Of a stretch of 64,000 nucleotides of DNA, positions 12,996 to 24,673 are shown piece by piece. Within the stretch, counting starts at the first letter, position 1. The number at the start of each line of letters is the position of its first letter. A program made the translations under genes and the position numbers. The notes beneath the pieces are model-generated. The model was not told where the DNA came from. It worked only from the letters and a program-made list of their open reading frames with translations, and ran no database searches. Location: the sequence record NC_031127.1. One strand, written 5' to 3'.

Positions 12996-13034
12996 GAAAA
13001 AAAAGAAAAGCGACCCACCCCCGAAGGAGTGGGT
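12996..13034 (-). terminator. Intrinsic terminator closing the radical-SAM operon
   Basis: Minus strand reads acccactcc-ttcg-ggggtgggt (one G-U pair) followed by a long U-rich tract. Confidence 0.8.
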
Positions 13035-13039
13035 ACGAC

Positions 13040-13696
13040 TTAGGCTACACCGTTATCCGCAGCAAGCTGCTTAACTGCGGTGAAGTCTTTTTGTTCCGTG
13101 AGGATACGGATGCGTTGTTTCAACACAGACATGACCATGTGCAGGTCATTGTCACGCGTGATGATTTCCGCATAGAGGGCTTTAACGTCCTCCACCGTCC
13201 ACGGCTCGATAGGCTCGTTGTTCAGCGTCATCCAGTACATCGGGTCAACCCCGGACTGCATGTAGCTTTGCATCGATTCGCGCGACTTCTCGTCAGCTTG
13301 GAACGTCTTGTCACGGAAGGTAATGGGTGCAAACCGTTCCGCGTTATACTTGTCGTTCAGTTTCGGATAAATCGCATTGACTTCCTGATAGAGGTAGTTC
13401 TCCGTCGAGGTCAGCGCGGTACGTACGTGGTCTAAATCAATCTCCAGCACGTCAGCAATAAACTCTTTGGTTTTCTTCATCAGGAATTCAATTTCAACCG
13501 GTGACAGGTCAAAGCCTTTGAGTTTCTCGCGGGCTTTCTTGTCACTCATACCGTTAATCAGATGGTAGTGCAGTAGCAGGCAGAACCCGATACGGTTTTC
13601 CATCTGGTCTTGGTATTCTTCCACGTAGTTACCGTAGCGGTCGATACGCGTGCCCCGTTCGAAATAACGGGCTTTTATTTCGTCGTTACTAAGCAT
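13040..13696 (-). CDS. DUF4376-like protein (phage tail-assembly-associated)
   Basis: The C-terminal half, FQADEKSRESM..W.T.NN....T.EDV.AL...I, matches the remembered DUF4376 pattern. Confidence 0.6.
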   Translation of the reverse strand: MLSNDEIKARYFERGTRIDRYGNYVEEYQDQMENRIGFCLLLHYHLINGMSDKKAREKLKGFDLSPVEIEFLMKKTKEFIADVLEIDLDHVRTALTSTENYLYQEVNAIYPKLNDKYNAERFAPITFRDKTFQADEKSRESMQSYMQSGVDPMYWMTLNNEPIEPWTVEDVKALYAEIITRDNDLHMVMSVLKQRIRILTEQKDFTAVKQLAADNGVA

Positions 13697-14232
13697 CCGG
13701 ATTCTCCTGCAATCCCAAGGTCAACCAGCAGACCGAAGTCAATGAACTGGAAATCATTTTCCAACTCTTCGCCCCAGAGCAGTTTGGCCTCTTCTGCTTC
13801 ATCACCCATCTCTTCCAGCGTCTTACGTGCCACTTCGAATTCGTGGTAGAACGCATCGGTCAGGTGTGTACCGCGTAATGCACGCACAGTCACACCAGGG
13901 AAGTTCAGGGCCAGTCCCACAACGTTGGTTGGGTCTGCATCACCGGTAGAACGGCGCAGTACCTGCAACTTGTGTTTTGGGAACGCCACCACACGTTTTT
14001 CGAAACCGGGATTACGTTTCTCGATTTCGACAACGGACTGGTGATCGTCTTCCACGCCCTGTAAAGGCAGGATGACATTCAGGCCATAACGGTTCAACAG
14101 ACGAATGGTGTCATCGTTGAAATCTTCACCCGGCACGATCGCATGGATGTTGTACAGCTTGTGTTTGCGAATGAACGCATCGACAAGGTGAACGTTACGC
14201 CGAGTAAAATTGTGAATCAGCAATGACTTCAT
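13675..14232 (-). CDS. Hypothetical protein in radical-SAM operon
   Basis: 185 aa with SD ggag located inside the upstream gene. Overlaps both neighbours. Confidence 0.75.
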   Translation of the reverse strand: MKSLLIHNFTRRNVHLVDAFIRKHKLYNIHAIVPGEDFNDDTIRLLNRYGLNVILPLQGVEDDHQSVVEIEKRNPGFEKRVVAFPKHKLQVLRRSTGDADPTNVVGLALNFPGVTVRALRGTHLTDAFYHEFEVARKTLEEMGDEAEEAKLLWGEELENDFQFIDFGLLVDLGIAGESGCLVTTK

Positions 14233-15541
14233 TCGAGGCTCCGAGTTCTAATTTAAGTTTATCTGCTTTCATGCGGTCACGCACGCAGCTCGCACAGTAG
14301 CACATGGATTTATCGTGCAGGTCGGCGACATTCGTGGTACCGGTTTTCTGATACCAGTATTCGGACACCAACAATTTCGCGGTCGTCCAACCACACTGGC
14401 GTCGCTCAGCATGGTACTCTTTACGCGCTTCCAGCTCGCCGTCACCGTTCTCGTAAGAAGCAGCCGCACAGCTACCGCACGAGTGTTTCATCGGGCAGCC
14501 TAAGCAGGTAGACGGGTAGTTGGTGTACTGCGTCTGAATTTCGTTCAGTAGTTTGTGACCGTCAATGTTCACAATCTCACGCCCACGCAGTTCTGCTACC
14601 GCTGAACGGGTGGTTACGGTTGACATGAAGCGGTTACAGCCGTAAATCTTACGGTCGAAGCCAAGACAGGTCATGTGGGTCAGCGTACCGCAGTAAGGAC
14701 GTACACGGTCTGGGTGCAGACGGGTTGCTTCATCGTCCAGCAACTTCTGACGCCAGTCCGGGTCCCATGTCGCCATGAAGTCCAGCCCATCAGGAATGAT
14801 GTGGGTCAGGATGTTACGTGGTGACTTGTGGTAGCCGTTGTCGACCCAGTAATCGATAACGTCAATCATCTGGTTTGCGATACCCAGAGCCATATCACGC
14901 GACAGAATGTCTTCGTACGTGACGTTACCGGAGATGGTACCACCGCCCGTTTCTTTAATCAGGTGAATCATGCTCTCGCCGTAACGAGGCAGGGTCTCAC
15001 CGGTAAAGGTGGCTTTGATACCGAGTTCTGCAATACCGACAGATTTCAGGTATTGGTAGCCGCGCATCGCCTGCTCGTACGAGCCTTCACGCGAAGTGGT
15101 GAAGATACGATAGCGGTCGTGTACTTCTGGCAGACCATCGATGGACACACCAATCGACAGACGGTCTTTCCAGCGTTCAATGATTTCTTTGCTGATAGGA
15201 CGGTCGAACAAGGTGCCGTTGGTAGAAATAGAGAATACGTACTGGCGGTTGTCGCGCGCCGCTAACTCTTCGGCTGTCTCAAAGACGGCTTTCAGAATCT
15301 TCGGCTGCATAAACGGCTCACCCCCGATGATGTCGATAATGATTTCGGCATCTTCGATGTGACGGTCGCGGTCAAAACACGCATGAATAAAATCGACAGC
15401 GTCATCCACTTTGTTGTTGCGCGGATACTTACGTTCGTAGCAATACGAACAGTCGAGATTACAAGACAGGTTAGTTACGACCTGATACGTGAGTGTGGGG
15501 CGCTGTTTACGCGTCTGCGATGAAGATCGTTCTTCACTCAT
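14195..15541 (-). CDS. Radical SAM enzyme with SPASM domain (peptide maturase-like)
   Basis: CNLDCSYC (CxxxCxxC) and GGEP. C-terminal Cys set: C-x7-C..YGC, then CLGCPMKHSCGSC..C, plus an extra CYCASC. Confidence 0.92.
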   Translation of the reverse strand: MSEERSSSQTRKQRPTLTYQVVTNLSCNLDCSYCYERKYPRNNKVDDAVDFIHACFDRDRHIEDAEIIIDIIGGEPFMQPKILKAVFETAEELAARDNRQYVFSISTNGTLFDRPISKEIIERWKDRLSIGVSIDGLPEVHDRYRIFTTSREGSYEQAMRGYQYLKSVGIAELGIKATFTGETLPRYGESMIHLIKETGGGTISGNVTYEDILSRDMALGIANQMIDVIDYWVDNGYHKSPRNILTHIIPDGLDFMATWDPDWRQKLLDDEATRLHPDRVRPYCGTLTHMTCLGFDRKIYGCNRFMSTVTTRSAVAELRGREIVNIDGHKLLNEIQTQYTNYPSTCLGCPMKHSCGSCAAASYENGDGELEARKEYHAERRQCGWTTAKLLVSEYWYQKTGTTNVADLHDKSMCYCASCVRDRMKADKLKLELGASNEVIADSQFYSA

Positions 15542-16431
15542 TTGATTACCTCATTGCGATGTTTGCGAGCGTGGATCGTGCGATTGATGTAACGGTAGGC
15601 TTCTTGCCCAATGACTTTCGCCAGCATGTTACAACCGCTATCGATTTCCATCTCGACATCCATCGTGTAGCCGATAGACGCATCGGAGTCCAGACGAACC
15701 AGACCGCTGCACGCGTTGCACGACTGCTCAAAGAACTTGCTGATGGAGAACCCAGTTGAGCCATTGTTCATGACATTCAGGCGTTCAATCTGGTCTTCCA
15801 TTTTGTTGTAGCCGAACATGAAGTTCATCACCAAATCTTGGTTCAGAGGTTTCTTCATGCGGTTGTCCAACAGCAGCGTCATGTCTTTGAAGCCGTAGTG
15901 GTGGAGTGCGCGGTGTAAGTCCAGCAGGTCAGTGTGCCAATATTTATCAGCCAACTGCTCACGAGTCACCACGGCCCACGTATGGACGTTGTTCAGCGCA
16001 GCCATCACTTCGAAGGCTTCGAATGCACCATCTTCAACGACACGCCAGAGCGGACGTTCGCTCTTTTTGTATCCATCGAACGACACACAGATACGGTTAA
16101 ACTGTTGCAGCATCGGGAGATGTTCCAGACGCATTTTCAGACCGTTCGTGTACAGCTCGTGAGTGAGATGTGGATAACGGGCTTTGACTTCGGCCAGCAA
16201 TGGCTCAATCTTCCGGGTCGCCATTAATGGCTCACCACCCGTCCAGTTCATCCCTTGTAAAGTCGGGTACTTCTCCAGTTGTTCAAACAGCGCTTCACGC
16301 TGAATTTCCCGACCAACATCTTTTGTGTCCATGTAATACGCTCCGCCGCAGAAACTACAATCCAAATTACACTTGGACGTCGTCACTATCGACAGCTCGG
16401 TAGGGGGACGTATTTGTGGTGCATCGGTCAT
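15538..16431 (-). CDS. Radical SAM enzyme (short, possible Twitch-like C-terminus)
   Basis: CNLDCSFC, WTGGEPL, TNG and SFDG motifs, with C-terminal CNAC..GC. ATGA overlap with the downstream rSAM gene. Confidence 0.9.
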   Translation of the reverse strand: MTDAPQIRPPTELSIVTTSKCNLDCSFCGGAYYMDTKDVGREIQREALFEQLEKYPTLQGMNWTGGEPLMATRKIEPLLAEVKARYPHLTHELYTNGLKMRLEHLPMLQQFNRICVSFDGYKKSERPLWRVVEDGAFEAFEVMAALNNVHTWAVVTREQLADKYWHTDLLDLHRALHHYGFKDMTLLLDNRMKKPLNQDLVMNFMFGYNKMEDQIERLNVMNNGSTGFSISKFFEQSCNACSGLVRLDSDASIGYTMDVEMEIDSGCNMLAKVIGQEAYRYINRTIHARKHRNEVIK

Positions 16432-16449: not shown

Positions 16450-17328
16450 TTAATAGATCGCGAAAAGGGGGTCGTCCTCAAACTTCGCGCCCACATCCAG
16501 AAGGAAATCGGAGTGGTAGGCATCGAGTATTTGATTCAGAACAGCCTGACGGTCGTTAATCCGTTTAAGATCATCGAGTGTCACGCTTCGCGACTTGATG
16601 TTTGAAACTGCCTTTTCTTCGTCAGCTGTTAAGGAAACCTTCGACAGAAGGAAACTTACCAGCTTGCTCAGGTCAGCCTCGGTACCCGGTGCTTCACCGT
16701 AACGCAATTGAACCAAGAACTGCATCCACGGTTTGCGGATACGGCGACTGATTTCATGTGGATCGGTAATCGCTTCGAACTGCCCATCTACCGCATTCCA
16801 GCGAAACTTGTAGCTATACGCCAGTAAGTCAGCCAGACAATGGATACCGAGCGTTTCATAACCTAAGATGTGATGGTATTTTTCCACACCTTTATATTCT
16901 TCCGTGCCGGTCGGTACTACGGTGTACCAGAACGGATTAGAAGACGGGTAGTCCCAGCTCCACTCGCGACGAACCATGGGAATGACGTCCAAATCCGCAA
17001 ACGGCGTGAAGATCATTTCCAAATCCATCGAGTGGTTCAGGACTGCATCAGTAAAGAAATACTTACCGTCAATCAGTCGGCCACTGGCGTTCAGCTCGCC
17101 TTCATTAAACTTCACATGCTGAACAGTGTGCTTACCGATGGAGTAGGTATTCTCTTCGGTGTACTGCTTACGTGTAATATCCCGCCCACGTACCTTAGGC
17201 CATTCGCCTGGCAGCATCGAGATAAGGCGTACTTCGTCAGCGATGTGTGCTTTCACACTGTCGTACGACGAAATGTGTAACGGGAAATTTTGCGTCGTGC
17301 GGTACGCCAAATGGAGGTCGTTCTTCAT
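16450..17328 (-). CDS. Hypothetical protein between Cys-rich peptides and radical SAM genes
   Basis: 292 aa ORF with SD aagga, co-oriented with short spacers. No motif recognised. Confidence 0.8.
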   Translation of the reverse strand: MKNDLHLAYRTTQNFPLHISSYDSVKAHIADEVRLISMLPGEWPKVRGRDITRKQYTEENTYSIGKHTVQHVKFNEGELNASGRLIDGKYFFTDAVLNHSMDLEMIFTPFADLDVIPMVRREWSWDYPSSNPFWYTVVPTGTEEYKGVEKYHHILGYETLGIHCLADLLAYSYKFRWNAVDGQFEAITDPHEISRRIRKPWMQFLVQLRYGEAPGTEADLSKLVSFLLSKVSLTADEEKAVSNIKSRSVTLDDLKRINDRQAVLNQILDAYHSDFLLDVGAKFEDDPLFAIY

Positions 17329-17346: not shown

Positions 17347-17556
17347 TTATCGGTTACCCGCGCCGTAACTGCACCCACCACTGCACGACCAGCTACAGCT
17401 ACCGTTGCAGTTATAATGCGAGAGTGGAAGCCCAGCAAGGTTGTTGGTCGAACTGACCGTGCCGCGTGTGGCGATATAGTTATTGGCCTGTGCGGTCGTG
17501 ATGTAGCCTTCGACGTTCTGCACCCGATCGCGAATGTTTTTCAATGAGATTGCCAT
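17347..17556 (-). CDS. Cys-rich precursor-like peptide 3 (69 aa, 4 Cys)
   Basis: Leader MAISLKNIRDRV..VE and core NCNGSCSWSCSGGCS. SD gagga. Confidence 0.85.
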   Translation of the reverse strand: MAISLKNIRDRVQNVEGYITTAQANNYIATRGTVSSTNNLAGLPLSHYNCNGSCSWSCSGGCSYGAGNR

Positions 17557-17577
17557 AGGTCCTCACTCGATAGAGTT

Positions 17578-17970
17578 CTATCGACTGCCTGAACAGCCAG
17601 AGCATCCCGTACAACTTGAACTACAGGAACCGGAACAGTTACCGGAGCATGTACCCGAACAACCGGAGCACCCACCCGAACACGAACCAGAACATCCTGA
17701 GCACCCACTGGTACACCCAGCAGTACAGCTCGACGAACATGAGGAACCGCAGCCCCCTGATGCCGAACCGGAACAGCCACCTGAACAGCTAGAGCAACCC
17801 CAGCTACAGGTTCCGCCGCAATCGTAATGAATACGTCCTTGGCCGCCGAATAAGTCGACGTTATTGGTTGCCTTATTACGGATGTAGGTTTGTACCCCAC
17901 CTTCCGTTTTTAAGGAGTTCGCTTCGATCACTGCAATGCGATCCGCGATGTTTCGTAAGTTGATAGCCAT
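17578..17970 (-). CDS. Cys-rich precursor-like peptide 2 (130 aa, 20 Cys, CxxxC/CxxC repeats)
   Basis: Leader MAINLRNIADRI..IE, followed by an ~80-aa core almost entirely C/S/G/T. SD ggag. Confidence 0.9.
   Translation of the reverse strand: MAINLRNIADRIAVIEANSLKTEGGVQTYIRNKATNNVDLFGGQGRIHYDCGGTCSWGCSSCSGGCSGSASGGCGSSCSSSCTAGCTSGCSGCSGSCSGGCSGCSGTCSGNCSGSCSSSCTGCSGCSGSR
17581..17820 (-). repeat. Degenerate Cys-x2/x3 coding repeat
   Basis: Recurrent tgt/tgc codons every 9-12 nt encoding CSGSC/CSGC units. Confidence 0.85.
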
Positions 17971-17979
17971 TGTTTCTCC

Positions 17980-18369
17980 CTACTGTGGACCAGAGCAACC
18001 AGAGCAACCGGTGCAGCTGGAAGAACACGACCCGGCGCAACCACCGCCACACTTACCACTGCACGAAGACGCACAGGTACCTGAGCAACCTGAACAACCC
18101 GAACACCCACCGCCGCAGTTAGAAGAACAGCTACCCACGCACGTAGAAGTACAGGTTCCTGCACAGCTAGTACAGCTTGCAGAACACCCGTTAGAACACG
18201 ACCAGCTACAACTGCCGCCACAATCCAGACGGGAGGGAGACCACCCACTGAACGAGTCCGCAGCGTTGTAAGCTTTCGATGCAACCTGCCCGTCTACACG
18301 AGCCCCGGTAGCATAGTTTGCTTCCACATTGTTAACGCGGTCGCGTATGTTTTTCATTGAAATCGCCAT
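17980..18369 (-). CDS. Cys-rich precursor-like peptide 1 (129 aa, 21 Cys, CxxxC/CxxC repeats)
   Basis: Leader MAISMKNIRDRV..VE, followed by an ~80-aa C/S/G/T core. SD aagga. Confidence 0.9.
   Translation of the reverse strand: MAISMKNIRDRVNNVEANYATGARVDGQVASKAYNAADSFSGWSPSRLDCGGSCSWSCSNGCSASCTSCAGTCTSTCVGSCSSNCGGGCSGCSGCSGTCASSCSGKCGGGCAGSCSSSCTGCSGCSGPQ
17983..18222 (-). repeat. Degenerate Cys-x2/x3 coding repeat
   Basis: Same pattern as 17581..17820. Both cores end in CSSSCTGCSGCSG. Confidence 0.85.
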
Positions 18370-18386: not shown

Positions 18387-18424
18387 AAAAAAATGAGGAC
18401 GCTGCCATAATGACAGCACCTCAT
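18387..18424 (-). terminator. Intrinsic terminator-like hairpin just upstream of the peptide genes
   Basis: Minus strand reads atgagg-t-gctg-(9 nt loop)-cagc-gt-cctcat followed by U7. Confidence 0.65.
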
Positions 18425-18434
18425 GTAATAAGTG

Positions 18435-19640
18435 TTATCGTGAACCCGCTTCGGCTTGTACGTCGTCGCGAGAAGTCAGGCTGCTGTTGACGTGTACTGC
18501 CGCCTGAACCACACCGCCGTACTGCTTGTGGAGATAGTTCGGGTGTGGGTTATCTGCGTTAACGTGGTTCTGGAGATTCTGCGACAGGGTGTTAATGGAG
18601 TTCTGCAATCCAGCAACTTGCTGTTTCAGTGCATTCAGCTGACCAGAGAGATCCTGAATCTGCTGCTGCGTATCGGAACCGGCGGATTCCAAATCACTGA
18701 TGCGCTGCTTGAGCCCATTGATGACTTGGTTCTGGTCATTGATCATCTTCTGGAGTTGTAACACCAGAGAGTTCAGGTCGGCCTGTTGTAACGCCGCCTT
18801 TTGGTAGTTCAATGCCACCGAATTCAGTTGGTCATTCCACGAACCGAGTGCACTGACCACCGCATCGATACGCGCACCGAGTGCTGTGTCCGCTGCTTTC
18901 AAATTACCGATGTCAGCGAGGACAGCGTTAATGGCAGTCTGAACCGTTTGAATCAGCGCGCGAATTTCGGTTTCAGTGAGACCGTTCGCCTGATGAATAT
19001 CCAGTGCGTGAACATTACCTTTGGCATCGATGTGCGATTGTAGCGCCGCCATCATCTGGGTTTGCATGTCAGACATGGCTGCCAGAATCTGCTGGAGCTG
19101 AACTTCGTTACCGGAGTTAATCGCATCGGTCATCAACGCGAGTTGCGTAATGATGTATTCGAAACCAAACAGGTCGCCGAGGTCTTTAAAGGCCGGAGCC
19201 GCTGCAAAGGTATCCGGGACATTACGCAGGTCAGCGAAGTCAACTTTGCGGTCTTCAAGGTTGGCATCAGCCAACGCCTGTTTAATCGCAGAGATAACCG
19301 CCGACTGTGGGCCACCGACAACCTGTGCAAGACAGACGATATCGGTTGGGATAGCCGGGTTAGTGACGACCACACCCATACAGATTTCGCGGTTCTTAGC
19401 AAGCTTCATGTACGCCGGATGGATGTAAATCAGCTCGTAGTCGGTACCGCGTTTATAAATGGTGTTGGGTTGATTGGCAGGCCGCATACGGAACGTATCC
19501 GCAAAGAACGGCCCTGCTGGGAAAGCGAACGCACGGTTGACCTTCCCCCCACCTAACACAACCGGGACATTGACCGCGTTACTGGACGCAGCCCCTGTCA
19601 GGTCAAGTGGGTATTGAAATAGAATATCTGGCATGGCCAA
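18435..19640 (-). CDS. Tail-fibre-related virion protein with long coiled coil
   Basis: 401 aa. N-terminal YPLD.TG..SN..P.GPFF..L..G.DY module is shared with the three long fibre genes. Heptad-rich C-terminal half and HVNADNPH motif. Confidence 0.75.
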   Translation of the reverse strand: MAMPDILFQYPLDLTGAASSNAVNVPVVLGGGKVNRAFAFPAGPFFADTFRMRPANQPNTIYKRGTDYELIYIHPAYMKLAKNREICMGVVVTNPAIPTDIVCLAQVVGGPQSAVISAIKQALADANLEDRKVDFADLRNVPDTFAAAPAFKDLGDLFGFEYIITQLALMTDAINSGNEVQLQQILAAMSDMQTQMMAALQSHIDAKGNVHALDIHQANGLTETEIRALIQTVQTAINAVLADIGNLKAADTALGARIDAVVSALGSWNDQLNSVALNYQKAALQQADLNSLVLQLQKMINDQNQVINGLKQRISDLESAGSDTQQQIQDLSGQLNALKQQVAGLQNSINTLSQNLQNHVNADNPHPNYLHKQYGGVVQAAVHVNSSLTSRDDVQAEAGSR

Positions 19641-19681: not shown

Positions 19682-22600
19682 TTACGGCAACTTAGGCATA
19701 AGATTGACCGTCAGTTTTGACGGGGTGACCGTTCCGCCGTAATAGTTGACCCCGTTGCCGATGTACAACGCGTTGTCGGCAATAAGCATGGGTATCGGTT
19801 GGCGGAAGATGACATCTCCATGAACAATCGGGAAATAATCATCGATGGAAACACCTGCTGGCATGGCGACTTTATAAACATCAAGCACACCACCAGTGAT
19901 ACGCCCCGCCGCACCCTGTACGTTCGTTATGGCACGAATGGCCACAGTAGCAGCATCGGAGATATAGAACACCGTCGCTGTGCCGTTATCCACGTTGGAG
20001 ACACTGAACGCAGCGAACGCGGTGGTCTGACCCCCGTTGATACCATTAAACACGAATGTGTTTTTGACCCCCACCTCGGCAGCAAGTGTGACCTCAGCCA
20101 GTGCAGAAGAAAACGTTGCAGAAACATCGAGGTTGGCGTTGGTACATCCAATGGTGCCGGAGCCCAAAGAGTAACCACTCTTCAATTTGATTTTCACCGT
20201 CGGGGTCGACGGGGTAATCTCCACAATCATTTTCCACGCAATCGAGATGACAGCCGACATCCCCGGAATACCCACCAAATACGCATTGTCTACATCAGAA
20301 GCCTGACCAAAGTTGGCACCCTTCATCGTGAACTTCTTGTAGTCTTTAGGCAAGGTAGCGACCGGCGCATCCCGCAGCAACTCGATAGGAACCTTGTGGC
20401 TTTGAGACGCGAAGACCGGGCCAATCTGCGACATATCCAGATACCCATCACCGGTAGCCGCCGGAGCAGAAAGGGGTTGCTTACGCAATAGCCCCAGTCG
20501 CGAAAGCCGCGCTTCACTGTCCACATTCACATCGTGGCTGTAGACCGTGGCGGTATGCTCCGCCAACTGTTTCAACTCGCCCAAGCGTTTCACTTTTGTG
20601 AACTCAGACGACAAGATACGCTGACTGTCGGTGACTACCGTCCCGATAAACAACCGGGTATCCGTATCGGGCATTTTCTGCGTCAAAAGCTGGTATTCCG
20701 GTTTGCCGTTCACCACCGCCGCGTGCATGTAGAACGTACGGTTTTGGTACGCACCGGGGAACAACGTCTTGAGGTTCTGGTTATACGCATCCAACGTGTA
20801 ATAGTCGGAACCAAACCGTAAGCTCTCAGACTCGGTGATGTACAGCTCCCACCCTTCTGCGGTTTTTACCCCAGCAACGATTGCAACATTCCCCGCAGGG
20901 GTGTAGTTTGTCACCCCTGCCGCAACAAAGTCGTTCGGTGGTGCGCTTGGGCCTGCGAAATAAGACGGTGAAATCACCTGCCCGTTTGACCGCAGCATTC
21001 GCTCCCCAACAAACGAAAGGATGGTAGCATAGTTGTAAAACGTGCTGCCGAGCACCCCCGCCTTCGTCGCCGTCAGCTTACCTCCGTTCAAACTGAAAAT
21101 CAGCTCAAGGTGGTACGCCGCGGATGACCCCACGACCTGCCGAATCATGAAGTTCGGCAAGTGCATGATGCCCGTACCGTCACCTTTCTCGTAGAAGATT
21201 GGTTGGCCCATTCTGCTGCTGTGCCCAGAATAGTTGGTATTCTGAATGAGTTGCAGGTTGCTGTACGTCGCGATGTTGGTGTATACAACGTCAGCTGTGG
21301 TCGTGACCAGCTGAACAACCCCGTTCACGACGCTCGGGTAGATTTGGAACGTAACATTCCCTAACCGCTTATTGCCGTTATAGAGTGCGTAGTACGACAT
21401 TTGTGCAATCCAAATCGGATTGGCATCAAGGGGTCGAATCGCCCACACGGAAAAGAGGAGGTTAATCGGGTTGGCAATGCTGTCCGCCACCTCACCTGCC
21501 GGTGCTGCCGCTTTTAAGGCCGCCGTTATCTTGTTCCATGTGTCGGAGGACAACGTAAGGGTATCGGCTTTTGGTACCGCACCCACGGCCTGGTACCGCT
21601 TCACACCGGGACCGTTCCAATACGCGCCGTTTAACTTACCCGACTGGAGCGTGGATGTCGCACACCACGTCATGTCTGCCAAAGCGTAGTAATCGTCAAC
21701 CGAGAAATTGCGGCGCACGTTACTCGGCCCTGCGCCCAAGTACGCGGGACCGTATGTTGTGTTTGGGTCTACCTCGACATACACCGCGCTGTTGGCGTTG
21801 GCGGGACTAAACAGATACGCATTATTGCCCAGATACACCGGATGGGATTGACCGACAGAATACACCGAGCCAATACCGCCCGTGAACTGCCAGTTCGCCA
21901 GAGAGGTGTAACCGCTTTTGTGGTCTCCTGCGATAAAGTCGTAGAAGTCCGCGTCCATTGTCGAGTGTGCTAACCCGTTGGGGAGGGTGTCCTGAGACTG
22001 ATCGTAAATAGACCATGCACGTTGGCCAACCCCTTGGAACACCCGCATGCGGTTATCAGCATTGCCGTACGGGAACCGAACTTTCCAGCCTGCCTCTTTG
22101 AGCTTTGTCCCAGTGGCAAGATACACATCGTCCGCATCGATTTTGAATGGGAAGATATCTGCATTATCCAGCGAGACCGTCAACGTATCCATGTCAATCT
22201 GGAACGAAGTCGCCCAAGTGAAACGGCCATACGAGTCATCAGGGCTCAACAATAACAGGGTGCTCAAAATACCTACCCTGGTCATGTTCTCGCGCTGCGC
22301 TACCGCATACGTCGCGATGTTGTGTGCGATGTTGCGCAGGTTACCCCAGCGTACTTTACCGGCCTCGGTCACATAGGTGGTGCCCTGTGTCGCAGGGTCG
22401 GTCGCATCGGTGTCTGTGTTAGCGCGCAGCAACACTGAGATACCGTTGACGCTGTTCCCCCCTTTGAGAGCAGCAGGGGTGTAAACCATCTTGTCCCCAC
22501 TGACTGACCCTACTAACGCATAGACACTGTACTGGGTATTGGTCAATTCCAGATGAAGAATGTAGACCTTCCCTTTATACACGATGGTTTGTTCGCGTGT

Positions 22601-24673
22601 CTGATCGCCGAGGTAGCCACTGACCGTGCCGTTCGCGTCGAACGAGGCAGGGAATTCACTCCGATACACCTGTTTGTGTTTGGTGTAGTTCAGTGTTCCT
22701 TCTAGCATGACTGTGTAGAAATATCCGTCGCTGCCTAAACAGACAAGTGCCGCATCGCCTGACGCAACCAGTGTGAGTAGCCGGACACCGGGATACTTAC
22801 TCATTCCCGCTGGGTGGTATGGGAACGACGTCTGCTGCTCCCCTGCAATTGACCCATCGTTGTTTACACGGGCATAGCCGTAGTAAATGCGATCGGTGTT
22901 CGGCAATCCGTCGTTTGCATTGCGTAACAGGTAAACGATGTCTCCTTCCTGCTTGACTGCCCCCAACCCTTTCCAGCTCAGCTGTTTCGCAAAACCGGCA
23001 AAATTCCCCACCGTTGGAATAGGCAGGAACCCACTGTTACCGTACGAGGCACCCCCAGTCGTCCACGACGGCAACAGACCGTCCAACACGTCTTTGTACG
23101 TATTAAGGCGCTGTTGTACGTTATAGCCCTGCTTTGACGTCACCACTTTGTTCGTGGTGGTATCAATCGCATCCCACAGTTGCAACAGACCTGCGTCCGT
23201 ATCAGACGCCGTTGGTACGCCCGTCAGGTCGGCAAACGTGTGCGTGTGGTTTGCCAGAGCCTTATTTGCCAACACCGCACGAATGGCGTTGGTCAACGGT
23301 TTCTCAGCAGGCGCGGTGTTGTTGATGTTACCCACACCTAAATCGGCGGTCGTTAAGGTAAGGGACTGTTTCGTACCGTCATCAATGAACTTCTTCCCGT
23401 TAATGGTGTACGTGTTGTCCACGTAATCATCCAGCGTCTTTTTCAGGACGTTAACAGCATACTGCGAAATCGCGGTACCCGAAGAAATATTTGCAGACAG
23501 GTTGGTGATAGCAAACAGCCCCGGCACTTTGTCAGTTGCCGTGGGCAGTTGCGCGTTCATGGTCAGTGGAGAAGACTGCTTCGCTGTACCGAATACCTTG
23601 ATGGTGTCGGTTGGAGAAAAGTAAGCGTTCCCCGGTAAGAGTTTTACTTCGGACAGGTACAACGAGACCATGTCCGGTGTGACCAGATATGCACCGTTAA
23701 AGATGGGTGCCACTGCGCCGTTGAGCACATAAGCCGTGTTCAGCCCCGAGCCCAACTCAACCCCCACACCCCGTTCGTTACTGTCTGCATCAGCAGTGAT
23801 GTTGATAGCACGGGTGGTGGTAATAAGGAACTTATCGCCTTGCAGGGTGATAACATGGCTCGAGTCGGCGGTACGGAATGTCAACGCACCGTTATTCAGC
23901 ACCTTGAGGCGACCACGCAGTTCACCAAGCACCACAGGCATCAGGGTATCGATGTGAGCTTGCTGAATGCCGTTTGCTTTCATGATAGCGACTAACTCAT
24001 CCAGCGTTTTACCGAATGCCTTCGTCGAGTCTACCGCTTTGGTCAGTACCTTTAACGCCCCAATCTCATCCGCAGTGTATTGGTGTGCGTTTTTGATACG
24101 ATGGTGGCTGTACATGTTGTCGTCGAAAATCTTTTTACCGTTGGCAAAAATCAAATCGGTGACCTCGGCGTACGCCACATCCATATCGCCTGCCCGCTTA
24201 ATCAAACCTTGACGGATATCATCCAGCGCTTTCACGACTTCATCGCGGAGCAGGGCTTCATCTAAGTTGGCAGGTGGGTCAATTGCAGGAACCACTGGTG
24301 CATAACGCATCAGTTCAGACCAGTCGGTGTTACGCGGGTCTTTGATGTCCTCTTTCACCAAGAACTTGCCAATCTCGGTCTGTGGTACGCGGTATTCGCG
24401 ACCAATCGAATAGATCGTGTAGTCAACAGAGGTGTCTCCGTTAATCAACATAATCCCGCCGTAGATTTGGTCTTTCATTGCGACAGCGGCTTCTTTATAA
24501 TAGTAGCCGAGGTAGTAATCCAGACCCTCAATGAGCTTCACGCCTGCGCTGTTTTTCAGCTCAAGCCCGGTACGGAAGAACGGCCCCTCAGGAGGGATGA
24601 CCACATTGTATTTGTTCGGATATGTGGTCGTCAGTAGCGTACCGGTAAATTTGGCTACGTTCGTGCTCGCCAT
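19682..24673 (-). CDS. Large tail fibre protein (1663 aa)
   Basis: N-terminal P.EGPFF..L..G.DY module, fibre motifs (DLGVGNINNTAPAEKP, HTHTF, AGLLQL) and a long beta-rich variable region. Confidence 0.8.
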   Translation of the reverse strand: MASTNVAKFTGTLLTTTYPNKYNVVIPPEGPFFRTGLELKNSAGVKLIEGLDYYLGYYYKEAAVAMKDQIYGGIMLINGDTSVDYTIYSIGREYRVPQTEIGKFLVKEDIKDPRNTDWSELMRYAPVVPAIDPPANLDEALLRDEVVKALDDIRQGLIKRAGDMDVAYAEVTDLIFANGKKIFDDNMYSHHRIKNAHQYTADEIGALKVLTKAVDSTKAFGKTLDELVAIMKANGIQQAHIDTLMPVVLGELRGRLKVLNNGALTFRTADSSHVITLQGDKFLITTTRAINITADADSNERGVGVELGSGLNTAYVLNGAVAPIFNGAYLVTPDMVSLYLSEVKLLPGNAYFSPTDTIKVFGTAKQSSPLTMNAQLPTATDKVPGLFAITNLSANISSGTAISQYAVNVLKKTLDDYVDNTYTINGKKFIDDGTKQSLTLTTADLGVGNINNTAPAEKPLTNAIRAVLANKALANHTHTFADLTGVPTASDTDAGLLQLWDAIDTTTNKVVTSKQGYNVQQRLNTYKDVLDGLLPSWTTGGASYGNSGFLPIPTVGNFAGFAKQLSWKGLGAVKQEGDIVYLLRNANDGLPNTDRIYYGYARVNNDGSIAGEQQTSFPYHPAGMSKYPGVRLLTLVASGDAALVCLGSDGYFYTVMLEGTLNYTKHKQVYRSEFPASFDANGTVSGYLGDQTREQTIVYKGKVYILHLELTNTQYSVYALVGSVSGDKMVYTPAALKGGNSVNGISVLLRANTDTDATDPATQGTTYVTEAGKVRWGNLRNIAHNIATYAVAQRENMTRVGILSTLLLLSPDDSYGRFTWATSFQIDMDTLTVSLDNADIFPFKIDADDVYLATGTKLKEAGWKVRFPYGNADNRMRVFQGVGQRAWSIYDQSQDTLPNGLAHSTMDADFYDFIAGDHKSGYTSLANWQFTGGIGSVYSVGQSHPVYLGNNAYLFSPANANSAVYVEVDPNTTYGPAYLGAGPSNVRRNFSVDDYYALADMTWCATSTLQSGKLNGAYWNGPGVKRYQAVGAVPKADTLTLSSDTWNKITAALKAAAPAGEVADSIANPINLLFSVWAIRPLDANPIWIAQMSYYALYNGNKRLGNVTFQIYPSVVNGVVQLVTTTADVVYTNIATYSNLQLIQNTNYSGHSSRMGQPIFYEKGDGTGIMHLPNFMIRQVVGSSAAYHLELIFSLNGGKLTATKAGVLGSTFYNYATILSFVGERMLRSNGQVISPSYFAGPSAPPNDFVAAGVTNYTPAGNVAIVAGVKTAEGWELYITESESLRFGSDYYTLDAYNQNLKTLFPGAYQNRTFYMHAAVVNGKPEYQLLTQKMPDTDTRLFIGTVVTDSQRILSSEFTKVKRLGELKQLAEHTATVYSHDVNVDSEARLSRLGLLRKQPLSAPAATGDGYLDMSQIGPVFASQSHKVPIELLRDAPVATLPKDYKKFTMKGANFGQASDVDNAYLVGIPGMSAVISIAWKMIVEITPSTPTVKIKLKSGYSLGSGTIGCTNANLDVSATFSSALAEVTLAAEVGVKNTFVFNGINGGQTTAFAAFSVSNVDNGTATVFYISDAATVAIRAITNVQGAAGRITGGVLDVYKVAMPAGVSIDDYFPIVHGDVIFRQPIPMLIADNALYIGNGVNYYGGTVTPSKLTVNLMPKLP

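Follow-up and report, generated by a model that had tools for sequence, protein, structure and literature searches.

We analysed a 64,000-nucleotide (nt) stretch of DNA, hereafter called the window. It matches Erwinia phage vB_EamM_Huxley (NC_031127) with 100% identity; this phage is a jumbo myovirus with a 240.8-kb genome and belongs to the genus Machinavirus. Window position 15000 corresponds to position 139000 of the record, and the genes in the region are intact. The subject of this work is a set of three small paralogous genes on the minus strand, pepA, pepB, and pepC, which encode proteins with a cysteine-rich C-terminal part, together with the genes for an accessory protein and two radical S-adenosylmethionine (SAM) enzymes that follow them. 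The minus-strand gene order is pepA, pepB, pepC, gp174, gp173, gp172, gp171, gp170, with gaps of 9-21 nt or overlaps from pepA to gp170. Two open reading frames (ORFs), gp177 and gp176, lie on the plus strand opposite pepA and pepB. The features of the core region are:

17980..18369, minus strand: pepA, 129 amino acids (aa), 21 Cys, the first being residue 50; unannotated in NC_031127; matches phrog_6085 (E 1e-48)
17578..17970, minus strand: pepB, 130 aa, 20 Cys, the first being residue 51; unannotated in NC_031127; matches phrog_6085 (E 1e-50)
17347..17556, minus strand: pepC (gp175), 69 aa, 4 Cys, the first being residue 50; annotated; matches phrog_6085
16450..17328, minus strand: gp174, accessory protein, 292 aa, phrog_8030
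15538..16431, minus strand: gp173, 297-aa radical SAM protein (PF04055, E 2e-11), phrog_1802; the gene ends in a 4-nt overlap with the gp172 start
14195..15541, minus strand: gp172, 448-aa radical SAM protein with a SPASM-like C-terminal Cys cluster
17948..18271, plus strand: gp177, annotated antisense shadow ORF over pepA, unsupported as a gene
17534..17827, plus strand: gp176, annotated antisense shadow ORF over pepB, unsupported as a gene

Residues 1-49 of PepA contain no Cys, and helices are weakly predicted at positions 5-18 and 22-35. Residues 50-129 form an 80-residue Cys-X-X-X repeat domain with all 21 Cys, in which X is mostly Ser, Gly or Thr. Lys and Arg occur in the N-terminal parts and are nearly absent from the cores. 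The distance from one Cys to the next is four residues in 15 of the 20 intervals of PepA and in 13 of the 19 intervals of PepB; the remaining distances are three, except for a single one of eight. The Cys content is 16%, and the Cys positions are strictly conserved. PepC has the N-terminal part and the junction motif of PepA and PepB, and its orthologues contain 2-4 Cys. The original prediction, made from the letters of this DNA alone, had described three paralogues with these Cys counts and first-Cys positions, a shared start MAI(S/N)(L/M)(K/R)NI, a shared core opening and a common end of the two long cores. All of this was recovered on the minus strand: the start is present in all three proteins, each core opens with Cys-Gly/Asn-Gly-Ser/Thr-Cys-Ser-Trp, and the last 13 residues of the PepA and PepB cores are identical. 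The accompanying statement that residues 17-48 are divergent is true only in relative terms, as the leaders show significant pairwise similarity (42, 56, and 32% identity with BLAST E-values of 4e-9, 2e-10, and 1e-5, respectively). No other ORF of the window resembled the PepA-type leader with an E-value below 0.3, and a Pfam search with the three peptides gave no match even at E 10. A recent gene conversion between pepA and pepB was considered and rejected, since the DNA repeats between them are only 60-77% identical.

The coding capacity of the three minus-strand ORFs was analysed by comparison with pEa_SNUABM_6, whose DNA is 88% identical. Read in the minus frames, 42 of 53 differences in pepA, 36 of 43 in pepB, and 26 of 30 in pepC fall on third codon positions (79-87%). 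These differences cause 9, 6, and 3 amino-acid changes, respectively. The best antisense frame (for pepA, the one annotated as gp177) would take 21, 13, and 7. In addition, a Shine-Dalgarno-like purine run is located 4-6 nt upstream of each of the three ATG codons. The third-position bias, the Shine-Dalgarno-like runs and the matches to phrog_6085 show pepA, pepB, and pepC to be the real genes, and gp176 and gp177 to be shadows of a Cys/Ser/Gly-rich frame. The annotation of the plus-strand ORFs is inconsistent among near-identical relatives, and a pepB-equivalent ORF is annotated in phage Parshik.

Homologues of gp174 were found in 62 of 50,697 phage records, and the same result, with an identical breakdown of organisms and hosts, was obtained for gp172. 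All 62 records are SPN3US-like jumbo phages, with Erwinia, Salmonella, Escherichia, Cronobacter, and Proteus as hosts. The N-terminal part of PepA matched 50 phage records in tblastn searches, mostly at places with no annotated feature. Nine sampled phages from five genera have the constant order fibre gene, gene for a 400-aa protein, pepA, pepB, pepC, gene for a 292-aa protein, and two radical SAM genes. An alignment of 25 peptides revealed that all 21 Cys columns of PepA and all 20 of PepB are kept in eight of eight orthologues each; in the same orthologues, the non-Cys core columns are 59-67% and the N-terminal columns 54% identical. In SPN3US, pepA is unannotated and gp166 (SPN3US_0166, L006:5910-6245) is an out-of-frame ORF over pepB. 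A word-indexed protein search with the PepA leader plus junction yielded one match only, a poor result because gene callers seldom call these ORFs.

Both gp172 and gp173 contain the motifs CX3CX2C and GGEP. In gp172, CX3CX2C is located at residues 27-34, and at least eight further Cys are present between residues 283 and 427, including a Cx2Cx5Cx2C run, so that the protein combines the radical SAM motif with the Cys-rich C-terminal domain of SPASM proteins. A homologue from a jgi source is named 'with 4Fe4S-binding SPASM domain'. gp173 has only three C-terminal Cys and thus no full SPASM domain; it is a shorter paralogue of gp172 assigned to the same PHROG. The top NCBIfam match of gp172 was TIGR04115, the CXXX-repeat target family of radical SAM peptide maturases (1.6e-36), followed by the PapB ranthipeptide maturase NF047865 (3.6e-36); weaker matches included TIGR03906 (3.4e-18) and TIGR04463 (1.3e-15). 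Orthologues in prophages reached 144-155 bits against TIGR04115, and for the one from Deferribacter NF047865 was the best match. Judged by these profiles, gp172 is related to the TIGR04115 enzymes, yet no member by the curated rule. The best solved relative is the thioether synthase CteB (5WGG; E 1.9e-12). In gp172, the radical SAM core begins near residue 20, and its alignments with the TIGR04115 and PapB models start at model positions 3-8. The alignment with CteB opens at CteB residue 104, and gp172 therefore appears to have no N-terminal RRE, the recognition element of maturases for ribosomally synthesised peptides with post-translational modifications (RiPPs). In the Salmonella phage SPFM2 (LR535921.1), the orthologue of gp172 is auto-labelled 'AlbA, subtilosin biosynthesis protein' and that of gp173 'MoaA'; the curated cut-offs support neither label.

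The accessory protein gp174 matched no family in Pfam and NCBIfam. Its AlphaFold model is confident (pLDDT 89.8, the predicted score in the local distance difference test), and a comparison with the PDB and BFVD revealed no structural neighbour besides its own orthologue, so this model may represent a new fold. Only the C-terminal helical half is related to the ~224-250-aa cassette proteins of other phages described below (hhalign 93%, E 3.4e-7). BLAST of gp178 and gp174 against the ORFs of the two contigs L031 and L048 detected no homology. Functions of gp174 as RRE, peptidase or chaperone were also considered and are unsupported, because no fold match was obtained in the PDB or BFVD.

Relatives of the Cys domain outside the SPN3US-like phages were found by DNA-pattern and profile searches, two prophage loci (L050 and L052) being identified via gp172 homologues; a scan of genome contigs with the exact junction pattern gave no confirmed relative. 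Four of the loci are:

L031, 213-kb viral contig: protein of 568 aa with 30 Cys, its gene next in line after those for the baseplate wedge; also genes for a 157-aa protein, a 224-aa protein and two radical SAM enzymes
L048, 228-kb contig: protein of 494 aa with 27 Cys; two radical SAM genes, then the gene for a 224-aa protein
L050, Campylobacter pinnipediorum (P2-like prophage): tail fibre with a PF12571 N-terminus (1.8e-40) and a Cys-repeat end; also genes for a 250-aa protein and two radical SAM enzymes
L052, lambda-like prophage region of Deferribacter abyssi: protein of 302 aa with 29 Cys, encoded downstream of a GpJ-like protein; also genes for a 250-aa protein and two radical SAM enzymes

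The orthologues of gp172 on the first two contigs share 37% (L031, E 3e-79) and 33% (L048, E 9e-64) identical residues with the Huxley protein. In the Campylobacter prophage, the cassette is flanked by the baseplate J/I genes on one side and by the sheath gene on the other; its fibre protein, which lacks the junction motif, also has a fibre-repeat match below the cut-off. A weak, below-cut-off match to a phage-tail repeat was observed for the 302-aa protein of D. abyssi. Five further contexts contain the cassette (L053, L055, L056, L057, and L058), one of them a temperate phage with an integrase gene. L058 belongs to an unrelated phage and encodes a trio resembling that of Huxley, with two long paralogues, one short one and a different N-terminal helix, together with a gp174 homologue; the short paralogue, for which a role as cap or terminator subunit had originally been suggested as a possibility, is kept as third member even there. 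In all of the ten informative contexts, two radical SAM genes and a gene for a 224-290-aa protein are present, and the junction motif occurs in nine. In eight lineages, the Cys domain forms the C-terminus of fibre-like proteins of 211-568 aa, with the junction motif in seven. When 1.84 billion representatives were searched with a profile, 120 matches were obtained. The junction motif is present in 67 of them; in 55 of these 67, the Cys run ends at most 20 residues from the C-terminus. One fused relative (P0205) passes the cut-off of the TIGR04114 repeat model (30 bits compared to 20), and relatives have weak matches to PF27846, the 'Cxxx repeat' target family, in precomputed Pfam tables.

What free and fused forms have in common are about 15 residues before the first Cys and the Cys-x-x-x-Cys-Ser-Trp junction. 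In 69 sequences anchored on the second junction Cys (Cys54 in PepA), the most frequent residues were Cys at the anchor (100%), Cys at -4 (88%), Ser at +1 (81%), Trp at +2 (75%), Cys at +4 (97%), Tyr at -6 (61%), and Gly at -12 (54%). These data suggest that the enzymes recognise the junction rather than a leader measured by its length. The original prediction had proposed a fixed leader of about 50 residues with a conserved recognition helix and a length-constrained spacer. Within the SPN3US-like group the length is indeed nearly constant (47-51 residues before the first Cys), but the wider family spans lengths of 47 to over 1,400 residues. A spacer measured from the N-terminus is not supported, given the C-terminal position of the same domain in the long proteins of the eight lineages. 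The N-terminal helix likewise is dispensable for association with the enzymes, because the domain stands beside the same enzyme pair in these fibre-like proteins. Of the proposed leader/core architecture, a Cys-free N-terminus, a Cys-repeat C-terminus and an apparent role as radical SAM substrates stand; a classical leader is not supported. An alternative raised at the same time, that Cys-rich tails dock onto a fibre, agrees better with the gene context and the fusions than a released peptide does.

Taken from the gene neighbourhoods, the conserved unit is a Cys-repeat domain, a SPASM radical SAM protein, a second radical SAM protein, and an accessory protein at phage fibre loci. The genes gp171 and gp170 appear to be outside this core, because cassettes elsewhere precede different genes; gp171 is absent from the cassette conserved beyond the SPN3US-like phages. 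Placement in a fibre or baseplate module, as expected of a tail-fibre-associated protein, was found for the Huxley block, for the L050 protein with its PF12571 N-terminus and for the L031 gene following the wedge genes. The two enzymes are not simply assigned one to each paralogue, because both persist with a single fused substrate. On some metagenomic SPN3US-like contigs, a gene for a 303-aa gp173-like radical SAM protein is inserted between pepA and pepB (L036:7418-8329, also in L016 and L040), which hints that the small radical SAM protein may be matched to particular substrates.

Several further observations were made at the related loci. The smaller radical SAM protein of L031 (L031:7885-9303, 472 aa) is internally duplicated, and the 157-aa ORF of the same contig (L031:6627-7100) is a fragment-like paralogue of it. 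In L050, the cassette is followed by a DUF1353 gene (L050:10068-10433) and then by the sheath and tube genes, and in L053 by the gene for an M15 peptidase, likely an endolysin (L053:5069-5458). A second Cys-X-X-X-rich group with a different N-terminal domain (P0192, P0193, P0197, P0200, P0203, P0214, P0218) includes giants of 934-1785 aa with hundreds of Cys (P0209, P0211, P0219, P0236).

The features flanking the core region in Huxley are:

19682..24673, minus strand: gp179, 1663 aa, syntenic counterpart of SPN3US gp168
18435..19634, minus strand: gp178, 399-aa coiled-coil 'virion structural protein', phrog_2163
18398..18420, minus strand: terminator-like hairpin with T-run, between the gp178 gene and pepA
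13675..14232, minus strand: gp171, 185 aa, function not assigned, phrog_7988; overlaps gp172 and gp170
13040..13696, minus strand: gp170, 218 aa, DUF4376 (PF14301, E 7e-10), weakly similar to tail-fibre PHROGs; closes the block
13013..13034, minus strand: terminator-like hairpin after gp170, downstream bound of the pepA-to-gp170 block

The genes from pepA to gp170 thus form an operon-like block that seems to be bounded by a terminator-like hairpin on either side. The hairpins were found by consensus scans, and promoters of SPN3US-like phages lie outside the consensus used; their positions point to a transcription unit of its own within the fibre module. Upstream of pepA, the same strand encodes the 399-aa gp178, whose counterpart is always located directly upstream of the trio in SPN3US-like phages, and then three very large proteins. 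The counterpart of gp179, SPN3US gp168, was described as a structural baseplate/fibre protein (PMC5105663). Downstream of the block, an endolysin and an annotated tail assembly chaperone are encoded. The block, situated between gp178-gp181 and genes annotated as tail assembly chaperones, lies within the tail-fibre module, the baseplate/fibre and tail-assembly roles of the flanks being taken from annotation.

The cassette was compared with known radical SAM systems. The CXXX-repeat radical SAM target systems (TIGR04114, TIGR04115, TIGR04117, TIGR04118), defined bioinformatically (Haft & Basu, 2011, as cited in PMC13692751), have tandem Cys-X-X-X repeats, which are also found in PepA and PepB, beside a radical SAM/SPASM maturase. 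The phage cassette differs from them by a second radical SAM protein and an accessory protein with a possibly novel fold, and by its position in tail-fibre modules, often with fusion to fibre proteins. PapB, known from freyrasin, iteratively modifies repeated short Cys-X3 units and, like gp172, is a SPASM radical SAM enzyme; it requires an acidic side chain or carboxylate as acceptor and recognises the leader via an RRE (PMC12373016). However, PapB makes Cys-X3-Asp thioethers, whereas the phage cores contain neither Asp nor Glu and gp172 has no RRE-sized N-terminus. Accordingly, neither of the two marks of ranthipeptide systems, an acidic acceptor and an N-terminal RRE on the maturase, was found. 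CteB (5WGG, 5WHY) shares the radical SAM core and SPASM domain and forms thioethers, but its SCIFF peptide has about 45 residues and six Cys, while the phage substrates have 69-568 residues and up to 30 Cys.

Closer in the size of the substrate is the CrpA/CrpB/CrpC system of Methanococcus voltae, in which ranthionine cross-links are formed at the protein level and the paralogous substrates share about 47 N-terminal residues and differ beyond them (PMC13692751). With protein-sized Cys-repeat thioether substrates of common N-terminus beside a SPASM enzyme and no obvious released peptide, it is a precedent for substrates such as those assumed here (PMC13692751). It differs in that CrpC is a TIGR04463 member with an RRE, a family which gp172 matches weakly, and in that CrpA has 17-residue repeats with C-X-X-Q/D and belongs to an archaeal, cellular system with one enzyme. 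QhpD is a radical SAM/SPASM enzyme that cross-links QhpC, a subunit retained in quinohemoprotein amine dehydrogenase (PMC13692751); there, three Cys-to-Asp/Glu links are formed with RRE and leader recognition in a periplasmic enzyme subunit that is neither a repeat ladder nor viral. The use of two radical SAM proteins encoded with paralogous Cys-containing precursors is known from thuricin CD (TrnC/TrnD) and RumC (PMC12093266, PMC8188230), but their products are short, exported bacteriocins with cleaved leaders. The S-to-C-alpha links of sactipeptides tolerate any acceptor residue and would fit the Ser/Gly/Thr cores. Each of the three X positions is occupied by Gly in some of the repeats, which leaves C-alpha as the only acceptor carbon available at all of them. 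In the HK97 capsid and in metal-stabilised fibre tips, an extracellular part of the virion is stabilised by bonds formed in cytoplasmic assembly; these bonds are autocatalytic or consist of metal coordination, and dedicated radical SAM enzymes are not known to be involved.

Taken together, we consider it probable, although far from certain, that PepA, PepB, and PepC are fibre-associated proteins with a cysteine ladder cross-linked by the radical SAM enzymes, presumably via thioethers. That the three proteins are substrates of these enzymes is very probable from the constant association. Thioether chemistry is suggested by the relatives of gp172, which form Cys thioethers (PMC13692751, PMC12373016), and the gene context points to a location of the product in the virion. 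The most fitting view of the Huxley proteins is that they represent a fibre C-terminal domain in minimal, free-standing form. According to this reading, pepA, pepB, and pepC would be co-expressed as late-module genes of the giant phage, each specifying a protein that opens with a short helical part, continues with a conserved junction of about 15 residues, and closes with a Cys-X-X-X run. gp173 and gp172 would act on the repeats, with gp174 as non-catalytic partner of the two enzymes, and the Cys thiols would most likely be converted to thioether cross-links within the reducing cytoplasm. The result would be a redox-insensitive, covalently stapled rod. The modified protein would be neither cleaved nor exported and would function as a whole, either as fibre-associated virion component or as fibre tip. 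Such a thioether ladder would give an extracellular structure a stability that disulfides cannot provide during assembly.

A number of results weigh against this reading. The scores of gp172 are far below the curated cut-offs of both families (126.6 bits compared to 350 for TIGR04115, 125 compared to 340 for PapB), and no RRE was detected in gp172 or gp174. The repeats of PepA, PepB, and PepC gave no match to TIGR04114 at E ≤ 0.1 (cut-off 20 bits); among TIGR04114, TIGR04117, and TIGR04118, none was matched and the best E-value was 0.09 (PepC). Neither Asp nor Glu follows the first Cys in 18 orthologues, and because the cores lack these residues, acceptor chemistry of the PapB, QhpD or CrpC type cannot apply. 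The AlphaFold monomer of PepA, calculated with an alignment of the three window paralogues, was uninformative (pLDDT 39). In phages with a trio, the long repeat is present on only two of three chains, unlike in a homotrimeric fused fibre. The region and its neighbouring genes are not mentioned in the SPN3US proteome papers searched, and published SPN3US proteomics could not have detected the trio, since the annotation lacks these ORFs or has them in the wrong frame.

Four other explanations have to be weighed. The cassette might encode a classical RiPP, with the ~50-residue leaders guiding the enzymes before being cut off and the cross-linked cores released at lysis as bioactive peptides acting against bacteria or phages or on the host. 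The leader/core-like layout, the three paralogous precursors, the relation of gp172 to CXXX-repeat, PapB and CteB RiPP maturases, and the AlbA label of a relative's enzyme would all agree with that. However, the same domain and enzymes occur at the C-terminus of 211-568-aa fibre-like proteins, one of them with a bona fide tail-fibre N-terminus, and the site in a structural fibre module is kept in both myo-like and sipho-like prophages. Moreover, the cores are 80 residues long, no RRE was detected, and scans of the block with Pfam, NCBIfam and PHROG models detected no peptidase or exporter domain, nor was an immunity gene detected. Given how frequently a fibre protein ends in this domain, a fibre-associated product is likelier than a cleaved and exported peptide, and we regard a released RiPP as unlikely, with roughly one chance in eight. 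The fibre context is also compatible with a role in assembly, in which the small proteins or fused C-terminal domains would be chaperone-like modules that help large fibres to trimerise and do not remain in the mature particle. In phages, the chaperone of a fibre is usually encoded immediately downstream of the fibre gene, and some fibres lose a C-terminal domain once they are assembled; here, the cassette adjoins fibre genes near annotated tail-assembly-chaperone genes, and a DUF4376 protein closes the block. About 20 invariant Cys and two dedicated radical SAM enzymes are hard to explain for a transient chaperone, though, and no protease or autocleavage domain was detected; such a role seems improbable, if by a trace less so than a released peptide.

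A still slightly smaller chance is given to the Cys ladders being unmodified and holding metals or iron-sulfur clusters, as a fibre needle or as a thiol/metal store, with the enzymes acting elsewhere. Some phage fibre tips are stabilised by metal ions, and the high Cys content with its strictly conserved positions would suit such a scaffold, as many Cys-rich proteins are metal ligands (PMC13692751). Against it stand the two radical SAM enzymes and the accessory protein that constantly accompany the ladder in phages of very different kinds, a pairing which is the signature of an enzyme and its substrate, the position of gp172 in the peptide-modifying SPASM branch, and the Ser/Gly-rich spacing, which contains no recognised metal-site motif and gave no metal-binding match in Pfam or NCBIfam. 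By far the least probable explanation, one that we practically dismiss, is that the plus-strand ORFs gp176 and gp177 are the real genes and the Cys-rich frames by-products. ORFs of this type are annotated in NC_031127 and in several relatives, but inconsistently between near-identical genomes; the third-position bias is found in the minus frame, the gp177 frame takes 2.3 times more amino-acid changes, and the minus-strand ORFs are paralogous, preceded by ribosome-binding sites, conserved over five genera and matched by phrog_6085.

The cross-linked, fibre-associated cysteine ladder can be extended to a more comprehensive proposal, which we offer tentatively and regard as somewhat less likely than not. 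Phages of several morphotypes would harden a part of their host-recognition fibre by means of a dedicated radical SAM pair. About 20 thioethers, probably S-to-C-alpha and possibly inter-chain, would be placed in a Cys-X-X-X tip, replacing disulfides that are impossible in the cytoplasm. In SPN3US-like phages, the tip would consist of three small subunits, which may form an A:B:C heterotrimer via the shared N-terminal helix.

The trio also reveals a systematic annotation error, as most of the ~60 SPN3US-like genomes, including that of a genetic model phage, miss, mis-frame or replace by antisense ORFs two or three of these genes, which has put them beyond the reach of proteomic studies. The cassette of a Cys-repeat fibre domain, a ~224-290-aa protein, and two radical SAM enzymes provides a simple genomic signature for surveys of phages and prophages across distant bacterial phyla. 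The searched literature contained no paper linking radical SAM enzymes with tail fibres and none describing these genes; if correct, our interpretation would join radical SAM/RiPP enzymology and phage structural biology, two fields that have so far been apart. For enzymology, it would mean iterative cross-linking of protein-sized Cys-repeat substrates without an RRE, by two enzymes with a partner of novel fold, and for structural biology a fibre component that is cross-linked by enzymes. Should the more comprehensive proposal prove true, the fibre tip would be the first virion structural protein to carry an enzyme-installed radical cross-link.

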